Shown here piece by piece: positions 4,701-57,758 of a stretch of DNA of 64,000 nucleotides; the first letter of the stretch is position 1, and the number at the start of each line of letters is the position of its first letter. The stretch comes from Zancudomyces culisetae HAW-14-8. Its lineage: Eukaryota > Fungi > Kickxellomycota. The notes beneath the pieces are model-generated. The model was not told the DNA's origin. It did no database searches and saw only the letters and a list, made by a program, of their open reading frames with translations. Both the position numbers and the translations under genes were made by a program. The stretch spans positions 992,001 through 1,056,000 of the forward strand of contig JBNJNM010000008.1 of assembly GCA_052426225.1 (NCBI GenBank), given 5' to 3'.

Positions 4701-4954
4701 TGTTGTGTGTTGCCATGTTTAACGTCCCATTTAGTGTTTTTTACACCAAATAACACACGGGACGGGTCATTTTACTTATTTTTTACTATATGCTGCGAAT
4801 TATTCTATAGTTATTTTGATTAGGCAAAAGAGGACATTTATTTAGTTAAACAAAAATTTCAATTTTATACAATAAAATCTACAAAAAATCTAACTAAAAA
4901 TTACAAAACACAATTAACCAATGGAAATGATTCGCCTATTGTAGGCATACAACA
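4701..4954. repeat. Solo LTR family G, TSD GTTG
   Basis: Direct copy of 3746..3999. Confidence 0.9.
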
Positions 4955-4958
4955 GTTG

Positions 4959-5332
4959 TGTCGTGAATTTTAATCACCGCAATTTATAATTTTTTCCCAC
5001 TGGGTTTTTAATAAATTGCTAAGATGGTTAGATTAAATTCACGTTACATTCCCGTAAATCCGCATGACAAAGCATTTAAGATGGATCGATAATTGAGAAA
5101 TTCATCCCCAACACGTTTATAAATTTTAATGACTGGATTTACAATTTTAGCTTATGTTTCATTTACTTGTTTCAGATTATTAATATTTCACATGATATCA
5201 TAAAATTTTTATGATTATAGTTTTTTATTAGGATAATAAATTTTACAGAATTTATATTAAGGTTTAGTATTTCTAAAATAAAACATCATCAGTTCTCAAA
5301 TACAGTTTTACTTATACTATATTTATACGACA
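4959..5332. repeat. Solo LTR family K, TSD GTTG
   Basis: TGTCG...CGACA; the right TSD copy overlaps the terminal TG of the next LTR. Confidence 0.8.
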
Positions 5333-5334
5333 GT

Positions 5335-5734
5335 TGTCGTGTAAAATTTAAACCAGATTGATGTGTAGTATGCTACCAACGTGATAATACAATCAATCAC
5401 ATTTTCTTTATTATAGCACTGATTGTTGAGAGTGCTCGTACAATCCTTTTCTTCATTGTGGTTTTGGTTGTATACTAACAATAGTTATTATATATATTAT
5501 ATTACTTATGGTTATTTACACTATACTTTTACTTATACAACTTCATAAATAGCGACTCAAGGAACTTCAGAATTCCTTGTCAGATTTTTCCTCCAACTTT
5601 TCGAATAGTACTTTATTATAAATAAACAACTAAAACATACTATAAAGTTAAAAGATCTTGGGCCAATTTAGTATATTCTGCTTGTCGTACTGATATATAC
5701 TATTAAATATTAAAATACAAAAAATTATACGACA
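5335..5734. repeat. Solo LTR family P, reconstructed TSD GTGT
   Basis: TGTCG...CGACA; removing the five later inserts restores GTGT on both sides. Confidence 0.8.
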
Positions 5735-6091
5735 GTGTTGTGTGATGTAATAATCATAATGCGGGAGATCATGATTATTATGTTCATCACGTGTCATACC
5801 AGTTCGGGTATGACCACTTGATGAGGATGCACCACTACCCCGTAGTGTGATGTGCATATAGGGGTGCTCGGGTGAGCTATTTCCCCTGTACAATGTCGGT
5901 GAGATGCTGCGCACGGACATTGGTTCTGGGCTCCTACGGATTTGGAGTTGACGGACACTTTCTGTCAACTCCCCAAGAGTCCGAGGGCTTAGAACCCCGG
6001 TCTCTTGGTCCATGCTACTAGCCGTACTCAGACTGGAGCTAGTTTCTGAATCCCTCTTGGATTCGCTTTTACTATAAAAGAAATAGTACAT
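5648..6091 (-). CDS. LTR-encoded Ser-rich ORF (copy of the Gag N-terminal extension in the 3' LTR of C)
   Basis: First 116 codons lie inside the LTR; matches 17535..17359 joined to 11257..11086; homologue at 40401..40721. Confidence 0.65.
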   Translation of the reverse strand: MYYFFYSKSESKRDSETSSSLSTASSMDQETGVLSPRTLGELTESVRQLQIRRSPEPMSVRSISPTLYRGNSSPEHPYMHITLRGSGASSSSGHTRTGMTRDEHNNHDLPHYDYYITQHCRIIFCILIFNSIYQYDKQNILNWPKIF

Positions 6092-6571
6092 TTTTGGTTA
6101 TTGGTTATTATAAATAATATTCTGAAGTCTGTTTTATTGTGTTTAAATAAATATACTATTTAATCCGTTGAGTAGAACATGGATGAGGTTTTTCCATTTC
6201 CCTCTTGTTCCTTAAATATAAATTTCTATTAAACTGCTACTATCTTCAAAACGTTTAAATTACTATTACTTATGTACTATAAGAACTATTATGACTTGAT
6301 ACTGACTTCCTCTACATATTTTACTTATGTAGTGAATGTTGAATTAGGTGTTGGGAACACCTAATAATTATTATTTAATTTAGGATTTAGTATGAAGACA
6401 TTTTTCATACTAAATTCTATCATTATTGAGTCGACTCAGCATGTAGAATTAATTTCATACTGTGTCGCTCATTTTCCAAATTGAATTTCATGCAGTTACA
6501 AAAATTTAATTTTCATTCTGCGATGAGTGTACTTCAATTTGTACTACAATTGTACTTAAATGTACAATTGC

Positions 6572-9500
6572 TCACTCATGCGACATTTCCCCACTTAATT
6601 CTTGATCATCCTCGATCATCTTATCTTCTGTAGGCTGTTTCATGGATATTGCGCCAGTTGTTCGAGCACTGCCTGTGTATAGGTCTGGTATGATTTCGTA
6701 TTCGGGGTAATATTTTCTCAATCTGTCCACATGTACTTTATCAACGTTACCCGCTCTGTCTATTATTTCATATATCCCGTTACCTAGGTTTTTAATTACT
6801 TCGAATGGTCCGACGTTCCTGTGCATTGTAAAAGGATTACGGGTTGCCGTGGCTTTAAGTACTTGTTCCCCTATTTCGAATACCCTTGGTCGTACCCCTT
6901 TGTTGTACCTATTCTCTTCATATGCTTTTTGTTTTTTGGCTAACTCAATCGACAACTGTCTGTATGTTGGTATTTCCTTCTCCAGAAACTCTAGTCTAGT
7001 ACGAAGCGCAACTTCCTTTTTAAGGTCCTTTGGTATTTCACTACTCCATATTTCCGGAGTAAGCAGTTTTAAACCATATACTACCTCTGCTGGCGATCTT
7101 CCAAGACTTTTGTGAATTGTTGTCCTCATTGTTAGCAGTGTGCGCCATATGTATGCGTCCCAGTTCTCCGGTCTGCTAATTGTCTGTTTGATTAGTAATT
7201 GTTTTAAAGTTTGAATAGACCGTTCAACTTGTCCGTTTGATGATGGCCTATACGCCGTCACCGGTTTTTGTTCGATCCCCAAAAACTCATTGAATCTTGC
7301 ACAAGCCTCGTTGCTTAAGTGTGTTCCTCGATCTGTGATTAATATTTTCGGTACTCCAAAGTTCGCTATGATCATCTCCGTTATGAAGGTACATATTACT
7401 TCGGCGTTTATTGCTTTTACTGCTAGTGCTACGGGCCACTTTGTGAAATAATCCACTGCTACAATTATGTATTTATTTCCTTCAGGTTTTGTTATGGGAT
7501 TCATAGGACCTGCTACATCCAGCCCCCATACCTTAAACGGTTCATTTGGAATAATTGGGTGTAGTCTTTCAGCTTTTCGTTGGCTATAATTAGTTCGTTG
7601 GCACACTTCGCAGCGTTCACAGATTAGTTTCACCATTGGGTAACTATTAGGAGCGTAATAGTGTTCGCTCAGGTATCGGTACGTTGCAACTGCGTTTCGG
7701 TGTTGTTCGTAGTGGATTCTATATATTGTTTCGTGCAACTCATTTGGGTGTAAGTATTTCCTCTTTACTTTGTCGTTATGTATAATGGTATCTCCTTGTA
7801 AGGCTAACATTGATATCAGTTTGTCGCCTTTTGTTGTGTCATTTATAGCTATATTATATTTTATCTTGTTTTTCAACTCCTCATATCCTTTAACAGAAAT
7901 GTATAACACTTCTTCAATCTGCTCTGGTATATCCTCCCAGGGAAATCTGCTTAAGTAGTCTGCCGGGTTTGTTTTCCCTTCCCGGTGTATAACATCAAAG
8001 TCGTAATGCCTCAGTTTTAACACCCATCTACCGATACGGCCTTTTACTGGTTCCTTTTTGAACAGCTCTACCAGCGCGCTATGGTCAGTAATAACGGTAA
8101 ATTTTCTTCCATATAAATAATAGTGGAAGTGTGTTAGCGCCCAGACGACTGCTAACCCTTCTAGGTGTGTAATGCTGTAATTTGATTCTGCTGGCGAAAG
8201 TGTCCTGCTAGCATAACATATTACACCTTCCTTGCCTTCTGCTCCTTGTGCCAATATGGCACCTAGGCCCGCGGTTGATGCATCCGTTATTACTGTGAAG
8301 TCCTTGTTCCAGTCCGGGTGGTTGAGTATTGGTCGATTTATTAACTGATTCTGGAGGTATTCATATGCCTGTTGTTGCTCGGCGCCCCATGTATAGTTTA
8401 CGTTTTTCTTTGTTAACGTTGTTAGCGGCTTCGCTATAGCTGAAAAATTTTTTATGAATTTTCTGTAGTACCCGACTAGTCCTAAGTAACTTCGAATCCC
8501 ATCTACATCCTTAGGTGGTACTAAGGTTTTCACTTTTTGAATGTTCTCAGTGTCCGGTTTTATTCCTTGTGCACTAATCGTGTGTCTAAATATTTTACTT
8601 CCGTGTACCCTATCCTACACTTTTCTGCATGTAATTTAATGTTATTAGCTTTTAGCAATTCTATTATTCTATACATCTTGTATATGTTCATTAAACAATT
8701 TAGAATAAATTATAATATCGTCAATGTACACCATGACGCATCAGTGTAATTCGCTTTTCAGTACGTCCTCCATCACTCTTTGAAATATGGATGGAGCATT
8801 CGTCAGACCGAATGGGAGTACAGTAAATTGGAATAACCCTAGGCCAGGGCCAGGTGTGAAGGCAGTCATTTCTTGGGTAACACGATCGAGTGGTATTTGC
8901 CAATACCCACTAAGCGCATCAAGTGTAGAAAAGTACTTTGCACCTTGTAGATTACTGAGTATTTCGTCAATATTCGGAATTGGGTACGCATCTTTTCTTG
9001 AAATATCATTCAACTTTCGGTAGTCGACACATATTCTCTTTTTCCCGTCCTTTTTATTAACTACTACCATAGGGAAACAGTATGGACTGTTCGATTTTAT
9101 GATAACACCCTGTGTCTCCATTTCTGCTATTTGGTTCATGACTTCCTCCTGTAATCTTTTCGCTAGTCGGTATGGTTTGCAATGAATCGGTTTTGGGTCG
9201 AGTAATTCAATTATTACCGGTTCAACCTTGGCTCTACGAAATTCTTCTAGATCATGAGCAAACTCATCCTCATTATCCCTTATCACCGCCTTAAGTTGCT
9301 GCTTTTGATGCTCTTCTAACTGTTGGTTAATGATCATGCCTTGGTTATCTATCAGGTTTACTGCCAAAATGGTTTTTGTCGGTTCTGTATTGCCATCCTG
9401 TCTTAAGATTAAAGGTACTTCATGTACTCTCCCTTTTATGTTGCAGTACATTATATTCTTCTCCATATTTATATGTGCTTTTAAACATGCAAATAGGTCT

Positions 9501-32124: not shown

Positions 32125-32910
32125 GTTGAGAATTTATTTTTGAAAAAATTGTTTCCTACTGTCATGAACTGAAACCATAATTCTAGATTTCTACCTTATT
32201 AGTATTATTACATAACATAGTTAATTATTACGCAATTTTCGGGTACAATTAGTACTTAACGAGTCACTCCAGAAAATCCAAGTATCTTCTATTACAATAG
32301 TTTGTAACTATTGATTAGTAAGCAAAGGTTAATAGTTTAGGTTATTTTATGTTTATTCATTTTAGCTATTTTAAAGGTATAAAAACCCTAGTTTTTTCTC
32401 TAAAACTTAACATTATCTGACAACAAATGTCTATAGTAAAACTTAAGTAGTACTTAAACAAATAAATAAATCATTAAAAAATGATACTGACACCTGCGCA
32501 AAATAATTTAAAGTACAAAAATTATGACCATGTCATAAATTTTTGTCAATTTTACAGCCAATTTAATAGTACAAATTGATTTATTTTTTAGTCGAATCGA
32601 TTTTATAATTTATTAGTAAATATAGTATTAATCATAATATTTGTAAATTATTAGTATAAAACGTAAAAATTGTAAATCCGACCACAACCACACTAAAACT
32701 AAAAATAATCATATATAGTGAGGCGTAAAACAATATTTATAGTGTAAGGAAAGAGCCATTTTGGCTACATTTTACAGGTTTAGGGCGGAATTCTTTTAAA
32801 TAAAATTATTTATACCAAAATTTGTAAAAAATTATCCAGTTGTGTTCTTTCCGAATGGGTATTAAGATTAGTGGTTAACTGGCTAGAATGGAAATTCTGT
32901 GTCAGTAATA
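32125..32910 (+). repeat. Old truncated E-family LTR
   Basis: Aligns to about 49070..49520; interrupted by the insert at 32160..32492. Confidence 0.85.
32160..32492. repeat. Solo LTR (J-like), TSD CCTAC/CCTGC
   Basis: TGTCATGAAC...TGACA, same start as 42253; interrupts the E LTR at CCTGC. Confidence 0.85.
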
Positions 32911-32914
32911 ACTA

Positions 32915-35900
32915 CATAAAGATAATAACCAATAGGAATCATTTTCCATTTAATTTGGTAGTATACAAACCTTTACCAAAGCATATTAGTAAACTTTAAG
33001 TCTTTTAATCTCTTTTATATAGTATCTATACTATTACAATAAAGACAATCATAACATATTAAAAGACTTATAAAGGTTCCTGTAATTCTCCTAGTTAAAC
33101 CTACACTTGTCATATCTTAGCAAACCCTAGTATAACTCTGTCACAACCATAGCAAGAACCATGTCAGAGAACAAATTCGCTGAAATAAAAGCTGTAGAAA
33201 CGAATCCGTTTCGCATGGCTGAACTAAAAAGACCAGAACTAGAAAAATTCGATGGATCAGCAGCTAATTATGACATATTCATGTCACGCCTGAGATTCCA
33301 CTACTGGTCGTATCCAGAACACTTTGAACTAGATAAACAAAAAATCAGATTCATAGGAAGTCACCTAACCTGAGCAGCATCACTATGGTTTTTGAATCTG
33401 GTGGGTTCAAAACCAACATTACTAGAAGATTATGATATTTTTTTGGCTACATTCAAGAGCAGATTTTCAGACCCCACAGCCCAAGCCACCGCCATTAACA
33501 AAATGACTAATCTTAAGCAAGGTAAACGCCCATTGGCTGAGCACGCAACAGACTTCATTACATATGCTAACCTATCAGAATTCAATGACGTTGCAAAAAT
33601 TCATACTTTTGTAAACAGCCTGAATAAGGATATTTTGTTGTATCTCTTCGCTACAGAACTGCCTAGCACCTTGGACGAAGTCATAAACGTAGCCGCCAGA
33701 GTAGAAAACAGAGTCAAAGCCAGAAACCAGTGCCTCCAGTTGGCAGCAGAAGAGCCACTCAGTCTTAACCCGTTTAGACCAATCCCAAGCAGCCTACCAC
33801 CAACGGAGCCAATGGATGTGGATGCCACTACCCTCCGCCCCCGCTACCCCCGCAGACCCCGCGAACACCGGGAACCCCTCACCCCAGAAGAACTCCAGCG
33901 CAGAAGAGACTTAAACCTGTGTCTTTACTGCGGAAAACCGGGCCATTTTGTAGCAAATTGCCGAGCCAAAAGGCTTTAAAAGGCCGTACCCAACAGTAGC
34001 CGGGAATTTAATATTGGGTAATTCCTATAGCAGATACACAAATAGTAGTGATGTTCCAAAGAAATTTTTAAAATTAATAAAGTTAACCAATAAAACATCG
34101 ACTACCCAGTATTGGCACTGATCGACTCCGGAGCATCAGCCAATTTTATCTGCGAAAAATACCTCAAGGAATTAAATTTTCTCACAAAACGCCAAGACAG
34201 ACCAGTAGCCGTATTGAAAATAGACGGAAAACCATTGAGCGAAACAAACATCGGTTACAAAGCTCACAGAATCAAACTAACCATTGGCCAGCACCAGGAA
34301 TACACAGATCTGTACCCCATAAGACCACAGCATGCCAAGATCATACTAGGTTTATCTTGGTTAAAAAAACACAATCCGAGCATTGATTGGCCGTCGTTAT
34401 CCATAAAGATAGACTCCAACTTCTGCAAGTACAGATGCTTACCCAAGACAGAGACACTGAACATGGTATACCGATGCCCAGACCCAAGCGACGACGAATC
34501 AGAAACTAGAAAATCTAAACTAGCCGCAAACTCGTACATCAGAACCAGAGAACTTAAGCCAAGGTACACTAAAGTCGGGTTACCCAATGTCGACAAGACC
34601 CCATTTTTCGGTAAAAAATGGGCCGAAAAGATTCGAAGCAGCTATTTTTCCGACCTCATGGAACTACAAGAATGCGTGAACCAGGCTACCAACAAAGCTA
34701 CCAACAAACAGGAACAGAATACCGATCCAATGCCAATCCCACCAGTAATCCAGGAACCCGGTTCAGCAAGCGACTATTTCTCAGCCGACGAACCAGAGAC
34801 AGCCAAGCAAACTGAAGCCAATCAAGCCGACCATGCCGAATTCGAGGAACCGGATCAGCCTGCAGAGACCAAACAAGAAAAACCGCCACAGATCACCGAA
34901 ATCCCACCACCGACACCAGAACCAGAAAACGCCCCGCCAGATACTGCCACGCCCCCAGTAGTGCTCATAAGTCCACCCCCAACAATAACTCAATTACCCC
35001 GCCAAGACCAACAGAAACACACACACCAGGAGGAGCCCAGCACTGAAGAACAAGAGATGCCGGAGGTCTACAGCCAATTTATGAAGGTATTCAGCAAGGA
35101 GAAAGCCAATACACTTCCAATGCACAGAAGATACGACTGCCCAATAGACCTAAAACCCGGATCCGAGCCAACATTTGGCCCCATTTACAATTTAACGGAA
35201 CCAATAAGACGAGAACTGGCAAAATACACAAAGGAAAACTTAGCCAATGGGTTCATCAGGAAATCCAAAACATCAGCAGGAGCTCCAATCATGTTTATCA
35301 AGAAGAAAGATGGTTCGCTCAGACTTTGCGTGGACTACAGGAAGCTTAACGAAGCTACAATAAAGAACCGCTACCCGCTACCCAGAATAGATGATTTGCT
35401 GGACAGACTTAGAACAGCCAAGATTTTCACCAAGCTGGATCTACGGAACGCCTACCATTTAGTCAGAATCAGAGAAGGCGACGAATGGAAAACCGCGTTC
35501 AGATGTAGGGAAGGCCACTTCGAGTACCAAGTAATGCCATTCGGGCTTACAAACGCTCCAGCCACGTTCCAACACTTCATCAACGACGTACTGAGGGATG
35601 TCCTGGACCATTACGCAGTCGCATAATTCGATGATATCTTAGTCTTTTCTAACTCTATGAACGAACACATTGATTATGTGAAATCCGTACTGGGTAAACT
35701 TTTGTGACATAATCTTTATGTCAAAGGGGGAAAAATGCGTTTTTCATGTGAACAAGGTTCAACGTTTGGGGCAGGTTATTCAGACAAAAGAGTAGAAGCC
35801 GAGTCAGAAAGCTAAAAAATGTGATGAAATGGGAAACACCCAAGAACAACAAAGACATCCAAACATTTTTAGGCTTCGCTAACTATTACAGTAAATTTAT

Positions 35901-48572: not shown

Positions 48573-49014
48573 TGTTATATAGTGGCGTAGATCACCTCTA
48601 ACCACGATATAATCGGCACTCCAATTAGGTTTGTTTATTTTATTATTTATATTATTAATATTGTAGGTCAAAATATATGATCTGAAAGGTTTATAATTAG
48701 TTTATTAAACATTACAAGCTCTAGTTTAATTATTTGATCTTCGGGTTTTTTCTAGATTAGAATAAATATTAAATAGGTTAGAATCGTTATATAGTTTTAT
48801 AGTAGTTTATTAAGTATAGTTAGTATTAAAGTTATAAATACTTGAAATTTTTCAGTAAGTCAATAGATATCAATAAATTCAGTTTTGATCTATTTACTAG
48901 AAGTCTATAACTTATATAATTTTAAACTTGAATAAACATAGTTAAATACATATTTAGTTATCAAAGTAAATAACAGTTTTTAATTAAGCGAAGATAAAGT
49001 ACCAACTCGCTAGA
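48573..49014. repeat. Solo LTR family D, inverted; reconstructed TSD CGAC
   Basis: Reverse complement of 4005..4458; CGAC flanks both sides once E is removed; right terminus imperfect (TAGA). Confidence 0.85.
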
Positions 49015-49634
49015 CGATGTTGTATGCAAAAGCATCAACTTAAATTTACCGCTTTCATTGCAGCAAAATAGCAGAGAAATCAATTTTGAAAAAATTGTTT
49101 CCTGCGCAACTCAATTTAGAGTACAAAAATTATGACCATGTCATAAATTTTTGTCAATTTTACAGCCAATTTAATAGTACAAATCGATTTATTTTTTAAT
49201 CGAATCGATTTTATACTTTATTAGTGGATTTATTTTTAATCAATTTTATTAGTAAATTATTAGTATAAATTGAAAAATTTGTAAATCCGACCAAAACCAC
49301 ACTAAAAGTAAAAATAAACATATATAGAGAGGCGTAATACTATTTTTTAGTGTAAGGAAAGGGCCATTTTGGCTATATTTTCCAGGTTTTGGGAGGAATT
49401 CTTTTAAATAAAATTATTTTTACCAAAAATTGTGGAAATTGTCCAGTTGTGTTCTTTCCGAGGGGGTTTTATAGATAGTGGTTAACTGGCTAGAAATGGT
49501 AAATCCTGTGTCAGTAATAACCACCCTTCTAGGGAATCGTGATTGATATTAGTGGAAGTTTTTTTGGGAAAATCCTATTGGACTAGTACTAAAAAATGAA
49601 AACGAATTCAACAAATGGGGGCTCTGCCGGGAAT

Positions 49635-52090
49635 GGTATGAGGAGAAATTGGAAGAAAAGTTAAATTTTTGGTCAGAAAGATTTTCTTTCTAATGACCAA
49701 AAATTTGCCGTAAAAGCTTCGGCTATGTCGCCTAGAAGCCATTTATGAGACGAGTTGGACCTTACACCATCTGGGGCCAATGTGGGCTAGTAGGAGGTTT
49801 GTTCCTTTTAAATAGGGAATAAATTCTCTGAACCACCGGACCAGGTAAGGTAACCACGAAAGCCCTTTTAGGGACTCGCGCTGGTAAATGCGAAACACTT
49901 TCAGTGGGGCTAGGAACATTGGCTTTAAATACATTTTTCCCTTTAAGATTTTTCTCGATACTTTTTCGGGTTTCATTTACATTTTAGCCTAAATGTAATT
50001 GAATTTCCCACATTACCCGACCTTTTCTTTTTAGGCTTTTGGGGAATTTAACAAATTGGGACTTGGGATATTAATTAAGTTTAATAGAACATTTCCAAAC
50101 AGATAAATTCAACAAATGTCTTTGGGAACTTTTCCCAGAACAGCTTAAAATGCTGTGTTACCTCGGGAGTTGAAGCAAAATGTGCGTTATGTCGCATACT
50201 TTTGGATACTTCCCAGGTGTTGGTGGTAAATGTTTATGGGTTTTTAGGCCGATAAGCATATTTTTGGTTGGAAGCGGAAACGAGACGGGTTCGTCTGGAT
50301 TCCCCAAATATTGAAATCTCCTAGATACGGTGATAGCTAAAGAAAGTTAATTTTCGTTAATGCTAGCTGTACGGAGACCTTCCAATACTTGGGAGAAGAA
50401 AGATGGATACTGGGGGTTTACTGCTGAAAAGCAAAATTATGTGTAAGTAACCTAAAAATACATGTACACAAGTCACCAAAGGTGGGCTCAAAACAGAAAT
50501 GAGACGGACTTCTTTGAGAAGTACTGGGGATTTCTGCGGCGGGTTTTACACCATATCACCGGCGTCTAGGGACTAAATGCAATGCCATTTAGTCTTAGTA
50601 GAAGCCACTAGTAGTAATGAGGATAATGGGATGTAAAAATCCTAATTTTTTCTTACTACACCGAGTCTAGGAGCCCGACCATAGGTTACTAGACCGGCAA
50701 CTTTGTAGCTAACTTTAAGAATAACATCCTTAAAGTGGAGAAAAGCTACCAGTGACAGTGGGAAGGTAAGAGTTAACCAACCTACTAAAGTCACTTGGTA
50801 AGTTTAAGCGAGCTATATGCAAGCTTATTCTAGGCCACAGTTTTGCTGGGAAACTACCTGGAGTTGAACTCCAGTAGTAAAAGTGTAAGAAGTTTAAAGG
50901 TAGAAATAAACTTCACACTTTAAATAGGGAGATCCTGTATCTATCTCCAGATACACTCCCAAGTTTTGAGAAGTTGAAGTTAGTTATCCAAATCCTTTTT
51001 CAAGATTTAGGGAAACTGAATCAGACTTCCTGGGTGGTTTTAAAGGAATAATTTTTTCTTTAATTGGTTTTAAGTAAGGAAATAACTGGGGAAATAATTT
51101 CTACCCTACCAGTTAACCCAGAAACTATACGAGTAATAAAATACTCGATTCCAAAACCGAATGAATGAAACAGGTGGAGGAATTTTGTGGTAAAGTTCCG
51201 TAAAATATGGAACTAAATTGGTATTAGGTTTGGTAGTAGTATTTAAACAAGATCAGCCTAATATTATCGGGAAACTAAAAAGTTTACCCAGTAAGTCAGT
51301 AAATGGTAGTACCCAAAAAAGGGACACCTTGGGTTCGGTAGAACAAACGGAAGTATTCCAAACCCTCCAACCTACGTGGTAAGAGTACTTTCAGTTCTGG
51401 GGACCTTTCTACACCTTAAGTAGCTAACAAGGTGAGATAAATATTTACGAGGTGATAACCCTGCAGGAATCAACCTACGTCATTAATGGGACAGGAGCAG
51501 AACTGGTTTACTCTCTTTGTCCGGCCTAACCATTCTACCAAATTAAGGATAGATAAGTTAGATGGGGGTCTTAGTATAACCAATTACGGAGTAGCCAAAG
51601 CACTCCAAAAGTGAAGGATACCATGGAGGTCAATTCCTAGGTATTCTACAGTCAATTGGGTGATGTAAGTTCAACATTCCCAAGGGGCTAGGGAGAGGTA
51701 GAAATTAAAATTTATTTCAACCAAACCCAATAGTGGTAACAAAGTAAGATGCACAATATTGTCGTCTTATGAGTTCTGTTAGAGCGGCGCGTCTTCAGAA
51801 CGGTAAATATCATTTAACTAGTTTCTACTTTCTAGTTGATATTATTCGGAACCGAAACATACTGAAAAGATTAAATTCAATAATCTTTTATTACACTAGA
51901 TTAAATCCCTCCAACGTTCGAAAGATCTAGTGTGGAAATATGAAATGGGGGTAAAACAAATCCGATGTCCAATCTTTTGGGCGGGGAGGTCCTCCCTTCC
52001 AAACCGTTCGGGAGTTGGGTAAAACATCAAACCCAAACTGTTCATCACTTCAAAACTGACTGAACTTTTGGTAACTTAAATTGGGAATTA
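49635..52090 (+). ncRNA. Putative large structured RNA region in the leader of element E
   Basis: No long ORF; near-continuous inverted repeats with G-U-compatible pairs; family not recognised. Confidence 0.5.
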
Positions 52091-52511
52091 AATTTATGAA
52101 TACAAGTCAGAATAACATAGCAGATAAAAAGCAGGGACACAGTCCAAATTAAAACAAAGTAAAACTAATCAAAACCAGCAAAGAGATACAAAAATTTAAA
52201 TTAATTGAGTCGAAATACTAAAAATCAAATCAGACTCCAAATCAAACAAAATCGAAATTTAATCCTATAAATCTAAAAGTTTATCCAACTTTCAACGGAT
52301 TAACAAGTTTTCTAAACAATACTAAACTACAACAATAAATAATACAAAAAAAAAAAAAAAAAAAATTATTATAATAAAATAATATATAATAAAAATATTG
52401 TTAAAAAATTAAACATAAAAACATAAAAATATAAAAATATAAAATTTATAAAATTACAAAATAAAAAAAAAAAAAATTATCAATTATTTAAAGTTTAACA
52501 ACAAAATCAAA

Positions 52512-55500
52512 ATGTTTAGTAAAAGAGCAGAAAAGTTGAGAGAGGATACTACTGATGATGAATCAGAGGAGGTCGAAGTACAGGAGACGAGCGTTCCTGA
52601 ACCAACAACTGACCGAATACCTCTAAATATGAACTTTACGTTCAACAGAGGAATTCCAGATGTAGCAATGTTCGATAGCAACACTACTACAAACGTGGAA
52701 GAATGGCTCGATAGGTATGAGCTAATGGCTAGGATCAACAGCTGGATGGAAAAAGACAAGATTGATTTCTTAGAATTGTTTTTAACGGGGAAAGACCTTC
52801 GATGGTACAAGATCAATAAGTCTAAACTAGAAAAATGGAAAAAGGTTCGTGAGGAATTCCTGGAAAAGTTTGAAGGTAAAGACAGAGAGGCACGAGCGTG
52901 GAATCAACTGCAAAGCCTTAAACAAAGTGACTACCTCGACTTTGAAGATTTTGAGACGGAGTTCAGCAAACTGGTCTCAACAGTCGATATTAAAGACGAA
53001 CGGATCAGACTTAAGTTTTTTGTAGACGCTCTTAACCCCAAGTATCAAAGGCAAATTTTAAAAGCCAAAGTTAAGGATGTCAAATCTGCCATAGCAATAA
53101 TCCAGGCAGAAGAGGATGTCGAGAAAATATTACCTACTGTCAGGGAAACATCAGAAAAACCAAAAAGCACTAGTAGGAAGGTGATGAAGGTACATAAATC
53201 TAATGAGGGACCAGATATGTACGAGGCGTTGATTAAAAAGTTTGACGAGCTTTCACTTAATCTTCTAGCTAGATTAGAAAAGAGACCCAATTACTCTGAA
53301 AAGTCTGCTCCACAACCAAGAAGACCGTTCAAGAAAGTGGAATGTACATACTGCAAAAGGCCAGGGCATGAGGCCGCAGCGTGCTACAAGAGGCAGAAGG
53401 ACCAAAAACAAGAAATTAACTGCATAGAGATAGAAAGAAAAACAGATGGAAACAAAGATACGGAACTCTATGCAGTGGACAAACGGAAGAGAGACGAAAA
53501 CAATGGCATGGATTTTCAGCCAGCTCATGCAAAAATCCGTGTGGCACAAAAAGAACCTAACAAAACGGGGCCAGTAATCAAACCAGCTACCCTAAGAGTT
53601 AGGAAGAAAATGGATATTAGACTATCGGAGAACATTCAAAAGTTTTCGATAGGTTCAGAGTTGGATAAATTAAAACCAGATATTTCACTTGGTCAACTGT
53701 TACAGTCTTCACCCGAAATCAGGAAAGAGTTGGTCGATCTCTTTAAGAAGATAGAAGCCAAGGAGCTGAACACCATTGTAGAAGATAGGACAACCACCAC
53801 AAACTGCAAAGCTTACATTGAAGTATTTGGAAAGCACCAGCTCACAGTTATTGATACAGGTGCAGCATGTTCAGTAATCTCAGAGCAATTTATGGACATG
53901 TTAGGTTTAAAAATTGAGCAAAAAGATCACTCAATGCTCATAACCGCTGATGGCACCAAGCATGAGACACTGGGAATAATCAGAGATGTTCCATTTGTTA
54001 TAGCAGGGTTCATTTTCCCAGGAGATTTAGTAGTTATGGAAGGAGGATTAAACCGGATGGTGTTGGGAGCAGATTGGTTACTGAAACACCAGGCCAACAT
54101 CGATTTGAGCAACATGGAGCTGCTCTTACCAACGGTAGAAGGGGACGTTGTAGTTTCACTGATGATAACTGAAACAGATGGTCCAAAACAGACAAACGAG
54201 TATGAATACTACTCGATGATCAAGGAAGTCGATAACCGCGAACAGAAAGAAAAACTACCAGAAAATATTGCAGAAGTGCTCAAAGAGTATGCAGAGATAT
54301 TCGTGGATGACTTGCTAGAACTCCAGCAAACAAATGTGTTGGAACACAGTATTGATACTGGAGATTCAAACCCAGTAAGAGTGCGACCATACAGAATAGC
54401 TCACCACCTAAGGGAACAGGTGAGGGAAGAACTAAAAATTATGGAACAAAGAGGGATCATAGAGCCATGTCAATCAGACTGGTGTGCACCGGTAGTTGTA
54501 GTCAAAAAGAAAAACGGAAAACTTCGGATCTGTTCTGACTACCGCAAACTCAACATGATTACCAGAAAAGATCTTTATCCTCTACCCATAATTGACGACA
54601 TACTGGCAGCATTCGGAGAAGCAGGAGTATTCAGTGTAGTCGATGCCATGAGTGGATTCTGGCAGGTACGTATGAACAGCGCGGATAAACACAAGACCTC
54701 GTTTGCATTACCAGGTGATGGTATGTATTGCTATAATGTAATGCCGTTTGGATTATGCAATAGTCCGGCAACATTCCAAAAGATGATGGAACGAGTACTG
54801 CAAAAGTACTCTGGAAGTTTGCTATTGTGTTTGTAGATGACATAATCATCTATTCAAAGAACACAGAAGACCACACTCAACATCTTAGAGAAGTGTTTGA
54901 GTTATTGAAGCAACACAAGGTGCAACTCCACAAAGAAAAATGTGAGTTTGCAAAGACCGAAATCAAGTATCTGGGATATACGGTCTCTAAACATGGCATT
55001 TCTACCAACAAGGATAAAATAGAGGCCATGGAAAAAGTAACCGCACCAAGGAACGTCAAAGAGATTCAATCGTTCTTGGGGCTCACAGGTTACTACAGAA
55101 AATTTATAGAGGGATACGCATTGATAGTAAAGCCGCTTACAGAGCTATTAAAGAAGGACGTACCCTGGACTTGGAGCGCAAGTTGTGAAGAGTCGGTTAA
55201 AACACTAATTAAAAAACTAACAGAAGCACCGACTCTGGCACACCCAAATTGGGAACAGGCATTTATACTCACAACGGATGCATCTGGAATTGGATTGGGG
55301 GCAATTCTATCTCAAGTACAAAATGGGGAAGAAAGACCCATAGCATATGCCAGTAGAACAAACAACAGGCATGAACAGAACTACTCAATCACACACTTGG
55401 AAGGATTGGCAGTAGTTTGGGGAGTCAAAAAGTTTAAGCACTACCTGTATGGAAAGAGGTTCAAGATTCGAACCGACCATATGGCATTGTTAAAAGTTTT

Positions 55501-56953
55501 TGATTCTCAAGAGTTAAATGGAAGAGTCGCTAGATGGGCCATGTTCCTAAGAGAGTACGACTTTGAATTGGAGCATTGCCGCGGTCCAAATAATCCTACT
55601 GATTATTTATCCAGGAACGTAGAGACCGGAGAAAAGGAAAACAAGATAACAAAGTATGAGGAACTAATGGTAATCGATGTCTTACATCATAAAGCCATTG
55701 AGAACTACCTCAGAGATTTCAGCTACCCGCTACGAGCTGATGAGGAGTTCAGAGCCAAGCTAAGAAAAAGAGCAAAGCCGTATAAACTAGTAAACGGTAA
55801 AGTATGCAAGTACTCTAGGGAATCAGGAATCCGAGAAGTGTTACACAGCGACAATGCTAAGTTAATGATAAGAGAAATTCATGAAGAAGGACACGAAGGG
55901 ATTCTAAACACTCTCAATAGAGTGAAAAATAAATATGTAGGAAGAGGCTTGCGTAAAATTGTAGAAGAAGTGGTACAAGAATGCGAACGGTGCCAAAAAT
56001 ATGAAGAAGGCGAATTTAGAAGAACGGAAATGCATCCGATAATTGCGCCTGCACCATTCCAAATCATGGGTATAGATGTAGTAGGACCCATTAACCCTAT
56101 ATCAAAATCTGGGAATAGATTTATCATCACAGCGATAGACTATTTTACTAGGTGGCCCATTGCGGTACCAGTAACAAATTTCCAGTCAGAAACCATCGTA
56201 GAATTTCTATTAAGTAAGGTAGTACAGGAGTTTGGAGTACCAACTCAGTTAATTTCAGACAGAGGCAGTTCATTTGTATCAGAAATAACTACGGAGTTAT
56301 ACAAGCAGTTGGGAATAAAACACACACCAACTACTGCTTTCAGGCCTCAGACTAACGGACAAGTCGAGAGATTTCATAGAACATTTAAGAATGTCTTAGC
56401 AAAAATATGCGTAATGGACAGAGACAACTGGGATAGTTATATTTGGAAAGCCCTACTGGTTGTTAGATCAATGAAAAACAGATCTACTGGGTTCAGTCCA
56501 TCAGAGATGTTATATGGTGTAAAAATGCAAACACCATCAACTTGGATGCCGCCGGCTGAAATTGATAACTTAGAGGAAGAAATATTGCAGAGAATGAGAG
56601 TCGTGCAGATCAGTATTCCAAAGATGAGAGAAAAAGCTATGGAAAATAACGCAAATTCAAAGTCAGTAATGAAGCAGAGATACGACAAAGTGGTAAAGCG
56701 TTATCAGTTCAAAGAAGGAGACCTAGTATTAAAAAGAATAAGTGGACCTGGAGGCAAGTTTGACCCAATCTGGGAAGGTCCTTACGAAATCATCAAGTGT
56801 TACACAAAAGGCGTGTATTTGATCAAAGACCCAGACGGAAACATGGATACAGTGAACGGCGATAGATTAAAGGCCTACAAGTATTCAGAAAGAATGGTCC
56901 CCGAAGTAGTTCCAAGTTCTTTAAGAACTAAAATCAGAAGATACAGGAATTAA
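52512..56953 (+). CDS. gag-pol polyprotein of element E with one frameshift near 54800
   Basis: CTYCKRPGHEAAAC, IDTGA, MPFGL, FVDD, TDAS, integrase, GPY; adding one A in CAAAAG joins the two ORFs. Confidence 0.93.
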
Positions 56954-57586
56954 TCACGGAGCGAAAGCTGGAGGGGGGACATTGTTGTATGCAAAAGCAT
57001 CAACTTAAATTTACCGCTTTCATTGCAGCAAAATAGCAGAGAAATCAATTTTGAAAAAATTGTTTCCTGCGCAACTCAATTTAGAGTACAAAAATTATGA
57101 CCATGTCATAAATTTTTGTCAATTTTACAGCCAATTTAATAGTACTAATCGATTTATTTTTTAATCGAATCGATTTTATACTTTATTAGTGGATTTATTT
57201 TTAATCAATTTTATTAGTAAATTATTAGTATAAATTGAAAAATTTGTAAATCCGACCAAAACCACACTAAAAGTAAAAATAAACATATATAGAGAGGCGT
57301 AATACTATTTTTTAGTGTAAGGAAAGGGCCATTTTGGCTATATTTTCCAGGTTTTGGGAGGAATTCTATTAAATAAAATTATTTTTACCAAAAATTGTGG
57401 AAATTGTCCAGTTGTGTTCTTTCCGAGGGGGTTTTATAGATAGTGGTTAACTGGCTAGAAATGGTAAATCCTGTGTCAGTAATAACCACCCTTCTAGGGA
57501 ACCGTGATTGATATTAGTGGAAGTTTTTTTGGGAAAATCCTATTGGACTAGTACTAAAAAATGAAAACGAACTCAACAACGACACA

Positions 57587-57668
57587 GTCACTTTGGCGGA
57601 GTGGTTAACGCGGTGGCCTGCTAAGCCATTTCCCTCTGGGAGCGCAGGTTCGAATCCTGCAGGTGACG
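57587..57668 (+). tRNA. tRNA-Ser (GCT)
   Basis: Acceptor GTCACTT/AGGTGAC+G, anticodon loop CTGCTAA, long variable arm, T loop TTCGAAT. Confidence 0.96.
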
Positions 57669-57670
57669 TT

Positions 57671-57743
57671 AGAGCTATGGTGTAGTGGCTATCACGTCTG
57701 CTTTACACGCAGAAGGTCTTGGGTTCGATCCCCAATAGCTCTA
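57671..57743 (+). tRNA. tRNA-Val (TAC)
   Basis: Acceptor AGAGCTA/TAGCTCT+A, anticodon arm TCTGC-TTTACAC-GCAGA, T arm TTGGG-TTCGATC-CCCAA. Confidence 0.96.
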
Positions 57744-57758
57744 TTTTGACAATCTTTT
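57744..57758 (+). terminator. Probable Pol III terminator (two T4 runs)
   Basis: TTTT directly after tRNA-Val and a second TTTT just downstream. Confidence 0.55.

Follow-up and report, generated by a model that had tools for sequence, protein, structure and literature searches.

The internal region of element E, a young and apparently active LTR retrotransposon, opens with a 2,456-nt leader that is a genuine non-coding part of the element's genomic RNA, folds more strongly than shuffled controls, moves with the element, belongs to this family alone, and is followed by an unstructured tract that runs up to gag. Tentatively, we take it for a structured cis leader that blocks ribosomal scanning, gag being reached through internal entry or an internal promoter. 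The window, that is, the whole stretch of DNA analyzed (64 kb), comes from the 27-Mb genome of a mosquito-gut fungus of the Harpellales.

Element E is a Ty3/Gypsy (Metaviridae) LTR retrotransposon, as evidenced by its LTRs, target-site duplication, primer-binding site, purine tract, and domain order. Its parts and surroundings are as follows:

49014..49017, + strand: target-site duplication ACGA, 5' copy, read directly in front of the TGTTG of the 5' LTR
49018..49613, + strand: 5' LTR, TGTTG...CAACA, from comparison of the LTR pair
49616..49634, + strand: tRNA primer-binding site (PBS) TGGGGGCTCTGCCGGGAA(T), overlapped by an 8-codon upstream ORF (uORF) at 49615-49641
49635..52090, + strand: ORF-free, hairpin-dense leader of 2,456 nt (local MFE −745 kcal/mol, 63% of bases paired, 37 AUGs)
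52091..52511, + strand: A-rich, G-poor, essentially unstructured tract ending at the gag AUG, from composition, AUG count, and folding
52512..56953, + strand: gag-PR-RT-RNaseH-IN, from the ORF list and Pfam domains
56983..57578, + strand: 3' LTR, with the purine tract GGAGGGGGGACA just before it
57579-57582: target-site duplication ACGA, 3' copy, read directly after the CAACA of the 3' LTR
57587..57744, + strand: pair of tRNA genes, tRNA-Ser(gct) and tRNA-Val(tac), found with ARAGORN; the end of E lies 8 bp upstream

Pairwise comparison of the two LTRs, both with TGTTG...CAACA ends, revealed ~99.3% identity. Over its positions 84-507, the 5' LTR matches a different family's LTR (32493-32915) at 89% identity; the E LTR is thus a mosaic with 424 nt in common with another family, and inter-family recombination does occur in this genome. 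Pfam domains succeed one another in the order Retrotrans_gag, RVP_2, RVT_1, RT_RNaseH, Integrase_H2C2, and rve, and the element's own genes use the standard genetic code. In the window copy, gag-pol is broken into ORFs of 774 and 708 aa near 54827-54836, whereas other copies carry an unbroken, ATG-started gag-pol ORF of 1480 aa, with open frames of up to ~1,494-1,498 aa. The PBS of E is also present in related families and in relatives from Smittium and Furculomyces. The family targets tRNA genes, inserting ~8 bp upstream of them: besides the window copy, three further copies lie ~6-10 bp from tRNA-Lys, tRNA-Thr, and tRNA-Ser(tga), respectively.

A preliminary description of this DNA had reported about 2.4 kb of ORF-free sequence between PBS and gag, richer in GC than its non-coding neighborhood, and its coordinates and content proved right. 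GC content of the leader is 37-40%, as compared to 21-29% in flanking non-coding DNA, and is the same as in the coding sequence of the window's transposons. Both the longest ORF and the longest stop-to-stop frame measure 77 aa, and period-3 power is 1.4, far below the 8-12 scored in gag-pol. Comparison of the leader with all elements in the window evidenced no similarity, either of DNA or of protein in six frames, and a Pfam search with its 10 longest stop-to-stop pieces yielded no match. Translation under alternative genetic codes, which the preliminary description had also contemplated, led nowhere: codes 4, 6, 10, and 15 gave no meaningful frame, the long frames under code 6 only reflecting TGA as the sole stop. 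The leader contains no tandem, internal, terminal, or long inverted repeats, k-mer enrichment uncovered no recurrent loop or Gag-binding motif in it, and ARAGORN found no tRNA-like unit.

Folding against dinucleotide shuffles on both strands confirmed that the self-complementarity of the leader is non-random. The z-scores of 31 windows of 150 nt averaged −2.28 on the RNA-sense (+) strand, which folds better than the − strand (−1.65); the corresponding values for gag-pol were −0.85 (+) and −0.91 (−). No other 2.4 kb of the 64-kb window folds as strongly on the + strand (mean z −2.3 versus −0.6 elsewhere). Perfect stems of at least 7 bp number 19 in the leader against 7.2 ± 3.3 in dinucleotide shuffles, and those of at least 9 bp number 4 against 0.5. 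All five hairpins pointed out in the preliminary description (49663-49706, 50571-50594, ~50853-50878, ~50881-50920, and 51893-51933) are indeed present. Folding concentrates in six 150-nt islands with z-scores of −3.0 to −5.5, each matched by 0 of 200 shuffles. The folded stretches are the following:

49651..49940, + strand: first folded domain, holding a 13+6-bp hairpin at 49662-49707 (z −2.98 for 49635-49784)
50085..50234, + strand: folding island (z −4.3)
50535..50759, + strand: strongest folding island, four hairpins in a run (overlapping windows, z −4.6 and −5.5)
50835..50984, + strand: folding island (z −3.75), holding the hairpins at ~50853-50878 and ~50881-50920
51585..51734, + strand: folding island (z −5.4)

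Modeled globally, the leader RNA would be a chain of many local hairpin domains and not one long hairpin: the global MFE structure contains few and weak long-range helices (5-20 pairs), and a single elongated hairpin of the shunt type was not found in it. Stems are nearly all 6-14 bp long, one hairpin alone reaching ~19 bp.

Whole-genome searches recovered the leader in 9 of 9 full and 2 of 2 truncated E copies at 96-99% identity, copies with an intact gag-pol frame among them, and nowhere else in the 27-Mb genome. Since the four copies next to tRNA genes sit beside four different ones, and the window copy is flanked by a 4-bp target-site duplication, leader-bearing RNA gets reverse-transcribed and integrated. 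Nine copies have kept their lengthened RNA genome without a single internal deletion. At the nucleotide level, however, the leader drifts at the synonymous rate, with no sign of selection among copies: diversity is 0.0143 in the leader, 0.0119 at third codon positions, and 0.0037 at first and second positions, and shared variants per site amount to 0.0118 in the leader, 0.0136 at third positions, and 0.002-0.003 in the LTRs. For polarizing variants, and solely for that, the majority allele per site was used, no consensus element being built. The 104 leader substitutions destabilize local folds by +0.68 kcal/mol, as compared to +0.69 kcal/mol for random changes of the same type (P 0.47), and the 25 shared variants show a weak trend toward milder effects (+0.18 versus +0.60 kcal/mol; P 0.10). 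Covariation, to which the preliminary description had looked for support, did not materialize, as the nine copies show 0 compensatory pairs at a divergence of ~1.4% that confers low power. Pair-preserving changes were 20 of 60 (18.3 expected), and variable sites are paired in 55% of cases versus 63% of all sites, figures that likewise come from 1.4% divergence and no cross-species homologue. Evidence for a function of the leader is therefore weak.

The distance from PBS to gag AUG is 2,877 nt in E versus 86, 160, 176, and 420 nt in related families of the same genome, which upholds the contrast in leader length noted in the preliminary description; Smittium and Furculomyces relatives have leaders of ~30-125 nt. 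The 420-nt leader belongs to a second family of 12 copies with E's PBS; it is unrelated in sequence and folds strongly (z −4.1 and −5.5), whereas the short leaders of the other families display no notable folding. Since the leaders of relatives, both here and in other Harpellales, are short (~30-420 nt), the long leader of E is a single, lineage-specific gain that followed the split from them. A word-based protein search across species returned no match with full gag-pol and one Furculomyces protein with gag alone; an exhaustive protein search uncovered Harpellales relatives at 31-44% identity, in whose contigs the leader is short or the upstream region absent. A metagenome scan for gag relatives gave none. 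On C6 and C10, two seemingly "88-94%" gag copies were considered as short-leader ancestors and rejected, being older copies truncated from the 5' side at different points by other insertions.

Searches for the identity of the leader were negative. Rfam 15, whose curated families include rRNAs, introns, ribozymes, ENE, and large non-coding RNAs, was queried with 49000-52600 at permissive E-values and yielded best scores of 15-20 bits (E 1.6-4.1), far under the gathering scores; the leader is thus no rRNA, intron core, or small ribozyme, in keeping with the preliminary description. The assembly comprises the nuclear genome, the rDNA units with their spacer, and the mitochondrial contig, none of which yielded a donor, and one exact 24-mer of the leader had no match in metagenome or viral contigs. 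Telomerase RNA was dropped as a candidate, its 7-nt TAACCCT match being at chance level. A captured host transcript was also rejected, since the whole-genome search yields E copies only, with no donor locus, and there is no coding signal. Neither a decayed protein gene nor a nested transposon came to light; the latter is at odds with the lack of terminal or internal repeats of the leader's own and of any copy outside E.

Between the leader and gag, the tract at 52091-52511 is 58% A and 5.9% G, with 1.4% G in its last 212 nt. Its folding energy is −3.4 kcal/mol per 150 nt (z +0.7), and its one AUG lies at the 5' edge (52096), leaving the last 415 nt AUG-free. It holds an AATAAA and an A-run of copy-dependent length, and ~115 nt of it are duplicated in one copy; this A/T-rich, fungal-type tract also has a TATATA. 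There are 38 upstream AUGs within 49635-52511, or 42 if the count up to gag begins at a guessed transcription start. The uORF at 49615-49641 stops ~10 nt before the first folded domain (49651), an arrangement to be read with the transcription start only guessed and earlier AUGs present. With ~40 upstream AUGs and structure worth roughly −745 kcal/mol, the leader should block scanning ribosomes. Were it impassable to them, Gag-Pol would have to be expressed by another route, most likely through ribosomes that enter on the 420-nt tract before the gag AUG or transcripts that start inside it; this tract could just as well be an internal promoter or serve in polyadenylation.

We favor, with reservations, the structured cis leader as the explanation of these features. 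Copied through each retrotransposition cycle as part of E genomic RNA, the folded block would act as a bulky cis leader like those of pararetroviruses and retroviruses and would keep the translated state of the RNA apart from the packaged one; it may also offer Gag a binding surface or conceal the RNA from RNAi. In these terms, the large structured RNA in a young Gypsy element put forward in the preliminary description holds as to its non-coding nature and non-random self-complementarity, while its candidate identities (giant IRES, packaging scaffold, captured non-coding RNA, silencing decoy, or virus-derived cargo) gained no positive evidence, and any role in translation bypass, packaging, or RNAi is put forward here as a conjecture.

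Known systems provide partial parallels. The Caulimoviridae are reverse-transcribing relatives of Ty3/Gypsy elements. Ribosomes bypass their structured, uORF-rich leaders, within which a packaging signal lies, and in badnaviruses the PBS stands in front of the leader structure, as in E (PMC5902531). Like CaMV, RTBV, and badnaviruses, E combines a long, folded, uORF-rich 5' leader next to a tRNA PBS with a first long ORF beyond the reach of linear scanning. Unlike it, the pararetroviral leader is ~0.6 kb long and forms one elongated hairpin with take-off and landing sites, whereas that of E is four times longer and made of many local domains; of the hallmarks of a shunt leader, E thus has the many uORFs before the first long ORF but not the one elongated hairpin. 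Moreover, shunting, packaging, and decoy roles have been demonstrated for those viruses, whose hosts are plants, whereas in E, from a fungus, they are putative. The 5' leaders of retroviruses and of the insect elements Gypsy and Idefix contain packaging, dimerization, and IRES elements, typically within 0.1-1 kb and in defined stem-loops conserved between species. In these too, structured non-coding RNA lies between PBS and gag, where it governs translation versus packaging, but the leader of E has no homologue or detectable constraint. As for the tract before gag, unstructured A-rich, G-poor translational leaders include the TMV omega leader, polypurine A-rich IRES-like sequences, and poly(A) leaders. 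The tract of E resembles them in being nearly structure-free at 58% A and 6% G and in ending exactly at the gag AUG, yet it is far longer (420 nt) and very variable in length among copies, and its activity is putative.

Nearly as likely as the structured cis leader is that the block is a neutral passenger, a foreign or lost structured RNA that was co-packaged and joined to the leader by template switching of the reverse transcriptase shortly before the family expanded. Candidate donors would be viral, insect-host, or other non-coding RNAs, perhaps polyadenylated, and the dense hairpins would be a donor legacy that the element merely tolerates. The synonymous-like substitution rate, with changes not biased to spare structure, is what such ballast predicts, and in so young a family the structure of the donor would not yet have decayed. 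The mosaic LTR, the AATAAA and A-run near the 3' side of the insert, and the single gain, all relatives having short leaders, point the same way. However, no donor emerged from the nuclear, rDNA, mitochondrial, Rfam, or 24-mer searches, and the A-run, hypervariable and of low complexity, is no clean poly(A) scar. An RNA genome lengthened by 40% without internal deletion in nine copies is somewhat unexpected for ballast in a compact 27-Mb genome, and a folded leader arose independently in the second family. Capture itself has precedents in retroviral oncogenes and maize Bs1, where the captured blocks are normally recognizable gene fragments with a donor locus. On this reading E would share with these a foreign block in the internal region, propagated with the element, but its leader shows neither ORF trace nor donor.

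A stronger version of the cis-leader reading, which we consider unlikely, would make the leader a selected, autonomous RNA machine, with a multi-domain scaffold and an A-rich platform serving cap-independent Gag-Pol synthesis, packaging selection, or shielding from Argonaute and Dicer. Less probable still is an RNAi-related module, whereby the leader, alone or as a short transcript from LTR to A-tract, would feed Dicer, serving as a small-RNA decoy or regulating itself in the manner of the 8S leader RNA known from CaMV and RTBV. The genome does encode two proteins with a Piwi domain, a pair of RNase III matches lies in each of two 2562-aa open frames, the TATATA and AATAAA of the tract could terminate a leader-only transcript, and pararetroviruses set a precedent (PMC5902531); against this, nearly all stems are too short for Dicer at 6-14 bp, the ~19-bp hairpin being the exception, and a weak search found no RdRP domain. 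Finally, a protein-coding cargo now decayed (extra ORF, env-like gene, or captured host gene) or a nested non-autonomous transposon travelling with E is largely refuted and very improbable: plant LTR retrotransposons often carry additional internal ORFs and pieces of captured genes, and the leader has the GC content of transposon coding sequence, but 3-periodicity, six-frame similarity to window elements, Pfam matches, help from alternative codes, repeats, and non-E copies are all lacking, and folding at z −2.3 is not what a decayed gene would show.

Retroviruses and pararetroviruses use structured leaders to control translation, packaging, and their evasion of silencing; to our knowledge, nothing of comparable size has been described in fungal LTR retrotransposons. 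E offers a clean natural case, a young and apparently active family in which every copy has a 2.5-kb folded block followed by an unstructured tract, with the short leaders of sister families and sister species as natural controls. If a passenger, the block records the capture of a structured RNA, possibly from the insect-gut environment, and shows that a tRNA-targeting element in a compact genome tolerates a 40% longer genome of its own. If functional, it shows how a retroelement builds or adopts a very large RNA module. Should it even be a selected RNA machine, no larger structured cis-RNA would be known from any LTR retroelement, and the neighboring family, with its 420-nt leader, would supply a second, independently evolved example in the same genome.

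Element E is an LTR retrotransposon with a complete set of parts, all on the forward strand and listed here in window coordinates:

49014-49017 and 57579-57582, + strand: 4-bp target-site duplication, ACGA
49018-49613 and 56983-57578, + strand: LTR pair, ~99.3% identity, termini TGTTG...CAACA
49616-49634, + strand: tRNA primer-binding site (PBS), TGGGGGCTCTGCCGGGAA(T)
49635-52090, + strand: the leader flagged in the preliminary description
52091-52511, + strand: A-rich tract
52512-56953, + strand: gag-PR-RT-RNaseH-IN

The coding region of this copy is broken into two near position 54830; other copies of E contain an uninterrupted 1480-aa ORF started by ATG, with open frames extending up to ~1,494-1,498 aa. 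A tRNA-Ser/tRNA-Val pair begins 8 bp past the end of the 3' LTR. ARAGORN placed these genes, tRNA-Ser(gct) and tRNA-Val(tac), at 57587-57744 with a 1-nt gap between them, and they are probably co-transcribed. Next to another E copy lies a comparable pair, Ser(tga) and Gly(gcc), with 3 nt between its members (L019:8982-9137).

The leader had been described from its sequence as more GC-rich than nearby non-coding DNA, devoid of long ORFs and dense in hairpins. Its GC content is indeed 37-40% versus 21-29% in the non-coding surroundings, its ORFs and stop-to-stop frames are all ≤77 aa, and the hairpins listed at that time are all present. Perfect local stems of at least 7 bp numbered 19 in the leader versus 7.2 ± 3.3 in shuffles preserving dinucleotides, and those of at least 9 bp numbered 4 versus 0.5. 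The folding comparison proposed earlier, run in 150-nt windows, yielded a mean z of −2.28 on the + strand and −1.65 on the − strand, whereas E gag-pol scored −0.85 and −0.91, respectively. When the full 64 kb was scanned, the leader ranked first by folding of all 2.4-kb stretches, the mean z of the remaining window, with the leader region left out, being −0.62. An independent folding run identified six leader islands with z from −3.0 to −5.5, in which none of 200 shuffles matched the native energy. With pairing limited to a 300-nt span, the leader reached a minimum free energy of −745 kcal/mol and formed a chain of ~25 local domains, 63% of leader bases being paired. The flagged observation is confirmed and lies beyond chance.

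Several identities for this stretch were discarded. Protein coding is contradicted by a period-3 power of 1.4 versus 8-12 in gag-pol; other genetic codes opened no meaningful frame, the ten longest leader frames had no match in Pfam, and six-frame translation of the leader matched no protein of the other window elements. Rfam returned only chance matches of 15-20 bits, in line with the earlier failure to recognize a known RNA, and ARAGORN found no tRNA-like unit in the leader. A repetitive or nested element was rejected, tandem, internal and terminal repeats being all absent. Capture from the present genome was also dismissed, as genome-wide searches with each leader half matched E copies only; because both rDNA units and the mitochondrial contig are present in the assembly, rDNA spacers and mtDNA are ruled out as sources at BLAST sensitivity.

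Of the eleven E copies in the genome, nine are full-length and two are older and 5'-truncated. The leader is present in every one of them (96-99% identity) and was later interrupted by other DNA in three. About 20 additional matches cover just the LTR end and probably represent solo LTRs. Four copies each lie ~6-10 bp from a different tRNA gene (Ser-gct, Lys, Thr or Ser-tga), so RNA that includes the leader has repeatedly gone through reverse transcription and integration. E inserts upstream of tRNA genes, at a distance of ~6-10 bp, in both orientations (loci L018, L019 and L023, and the window); the LTR facing the tRNA is the 5' one in L019 and the 3' one in L018, L023 and the window. The LTR of E is itself a mosaic, since its positions 84-507 (window 49101-49524, ~424 nt) are 89% identical to window 32493-32915. 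That segment lies in an LTR from an unrelated Gypsy family whose gag-pol is different and whose leader is short, which indicates exchange of LTR parts between families.

A 98%-identical Gag fragment was found on a public contig of accession series LSSK (Zancudomyces culisetae, 28.7 Mb; PMC5954228). The next-nearest Gag relatives, from Furculomyces and Smittium (38-43% identity), share the PBS and have leaders of only ~30-125 nt where upstream DNA is available, and in related families of this genome the leader measures 86, 160, 176 or 420 nt. These short leaders in relatives identify the 2.9-kb leader of E as derived, gained specifically in its lineage. The 420-nt leader (one copy at L027:7204-7623 = C23:332703-333122, − strand) is that of a Gypsy family with 12 copies, a 1512-aa ORF and the same PBS as E. 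This leader folds strongly (z −4.1 sense, −5.5 antisense), which the short leaders of related families do not, and has no sequence in common with the E leader; its copies, at 98-100% identity, are too alike for a covariation test. On the Furculomyces boomerangus contig with the closest foreign relative of E (MBFT01000814.1), a 1,765-bp direct repeat including gag (1-1765 and 4887-6651, 99.4% identity) suggests tandem or nested copies sharing an LTR.

Selection was assessed site by site across nine E copies, with no consensus built.

Variation among nine E copies (region: pi; shared variants per site)
Structured leader: 0.0143; 0.0118
gag-pol third codon positions: 0.0119; 0.0136
gag-pol first and second codon positions: ~0.0037; 0.0014-0.0020
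LTRs: 0.0073-0.0113; 0.002-0.003

Leader pi is close to that of third codon positions, so its primary sequence is drifting at a roughly neutral rate. We also compared the effect of observed biallelic changes on local fold energy with that of random changes of the same type. At 1.4% divergence, the 104 leader substitutions were as destabilizing as random ones (+0.68 versus +0.69 kcal/mol, P 0.47), and the 25 older, shared variants revealed a weak, non-significant sparing (+0.18 versus +0.60 kcal/mol, P 0.10). Paired positions made up 55% of variable sites versus 63% of all leader sites, 20 of 60 changes preserved pairing versus 18.3 expected, and no compensatory double change occurred among the nine copies, which diverge by only 1.4%. 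A-to-T and T-to-A transversions account for 35 of the 104 substitutions, an unusual spectrum compared with a transition-dominated one. A nearly equal alternative to a functional leader is that of a neutral passenger, captured from some structured RNA by template switching; it agrees with the drift data and would account for the folding without selection inside E. The genome searches, rDNA units and mitochondrial contig included, turned up no donor.

Downstream of the leader, the tract at 52091-52511 is 58% A and 5.9% G (1.4% G in its final 212 nt) and nearly unfolded (−3.4 kcal/mol per 150 nt, z +0.7); its single AUG lies at the 5' edge, leaving the final 415 nt free of AUGs. Its length is clearly not fixed: A-runs before gag vary from 18 to >40 A among copies (window 52335-52480), and one copy bears a ~115-nt tandem duplication. 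Upstream of this tract there are 37 AUGs, or 41 if the count begins at a guessed transcription start. Ribosomes scanning through the leader would probably not arrive at the gag AUG, so Gag-Pol must come by one of three other routes. Ribosomes might enter internally, or jump in a shunt-like manner, onto the A-rich tract, or a sub-genomic transcript might start within this AT-rich stretch; a spliced RNA would be an unlikely source, because a 2.5-kb intron is atypical for such a fungus.

If the leader is functional, its closest working analogue would be the pararetrovirus pregenomic leader, which is folded, uORF-rich and PBS-adjacent, is bypassed by ribosomes and has packaging and siRNA-decoy roles (PMC5902531); the corresponding functions in E are putative. 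The E leader departs from that single-hairpin class, as its global fold gained just a few long-range helices and formed no single elongated hairpin. The host genome has Argonaute and Dicer-like genes, and most of the leader stems fall short of the length that Dicer needs. Piwi domains occur in two genes, and a weak search for an RdRP domain detected none in the genome. Two 2562-aa Dicer-like open frames on separate contigs (C12:677623-679677 and C6:2172780-2174834), each with two RNase III matches, score nearly alike and may represent a recent duplication. Functional readings of the leader are thus far unproven. The E leader represents an unusual form of a known type of sequence, the LTR-retroelement leader, and stands out for being large and densely folded and for contrasting so sharply with sister elements.
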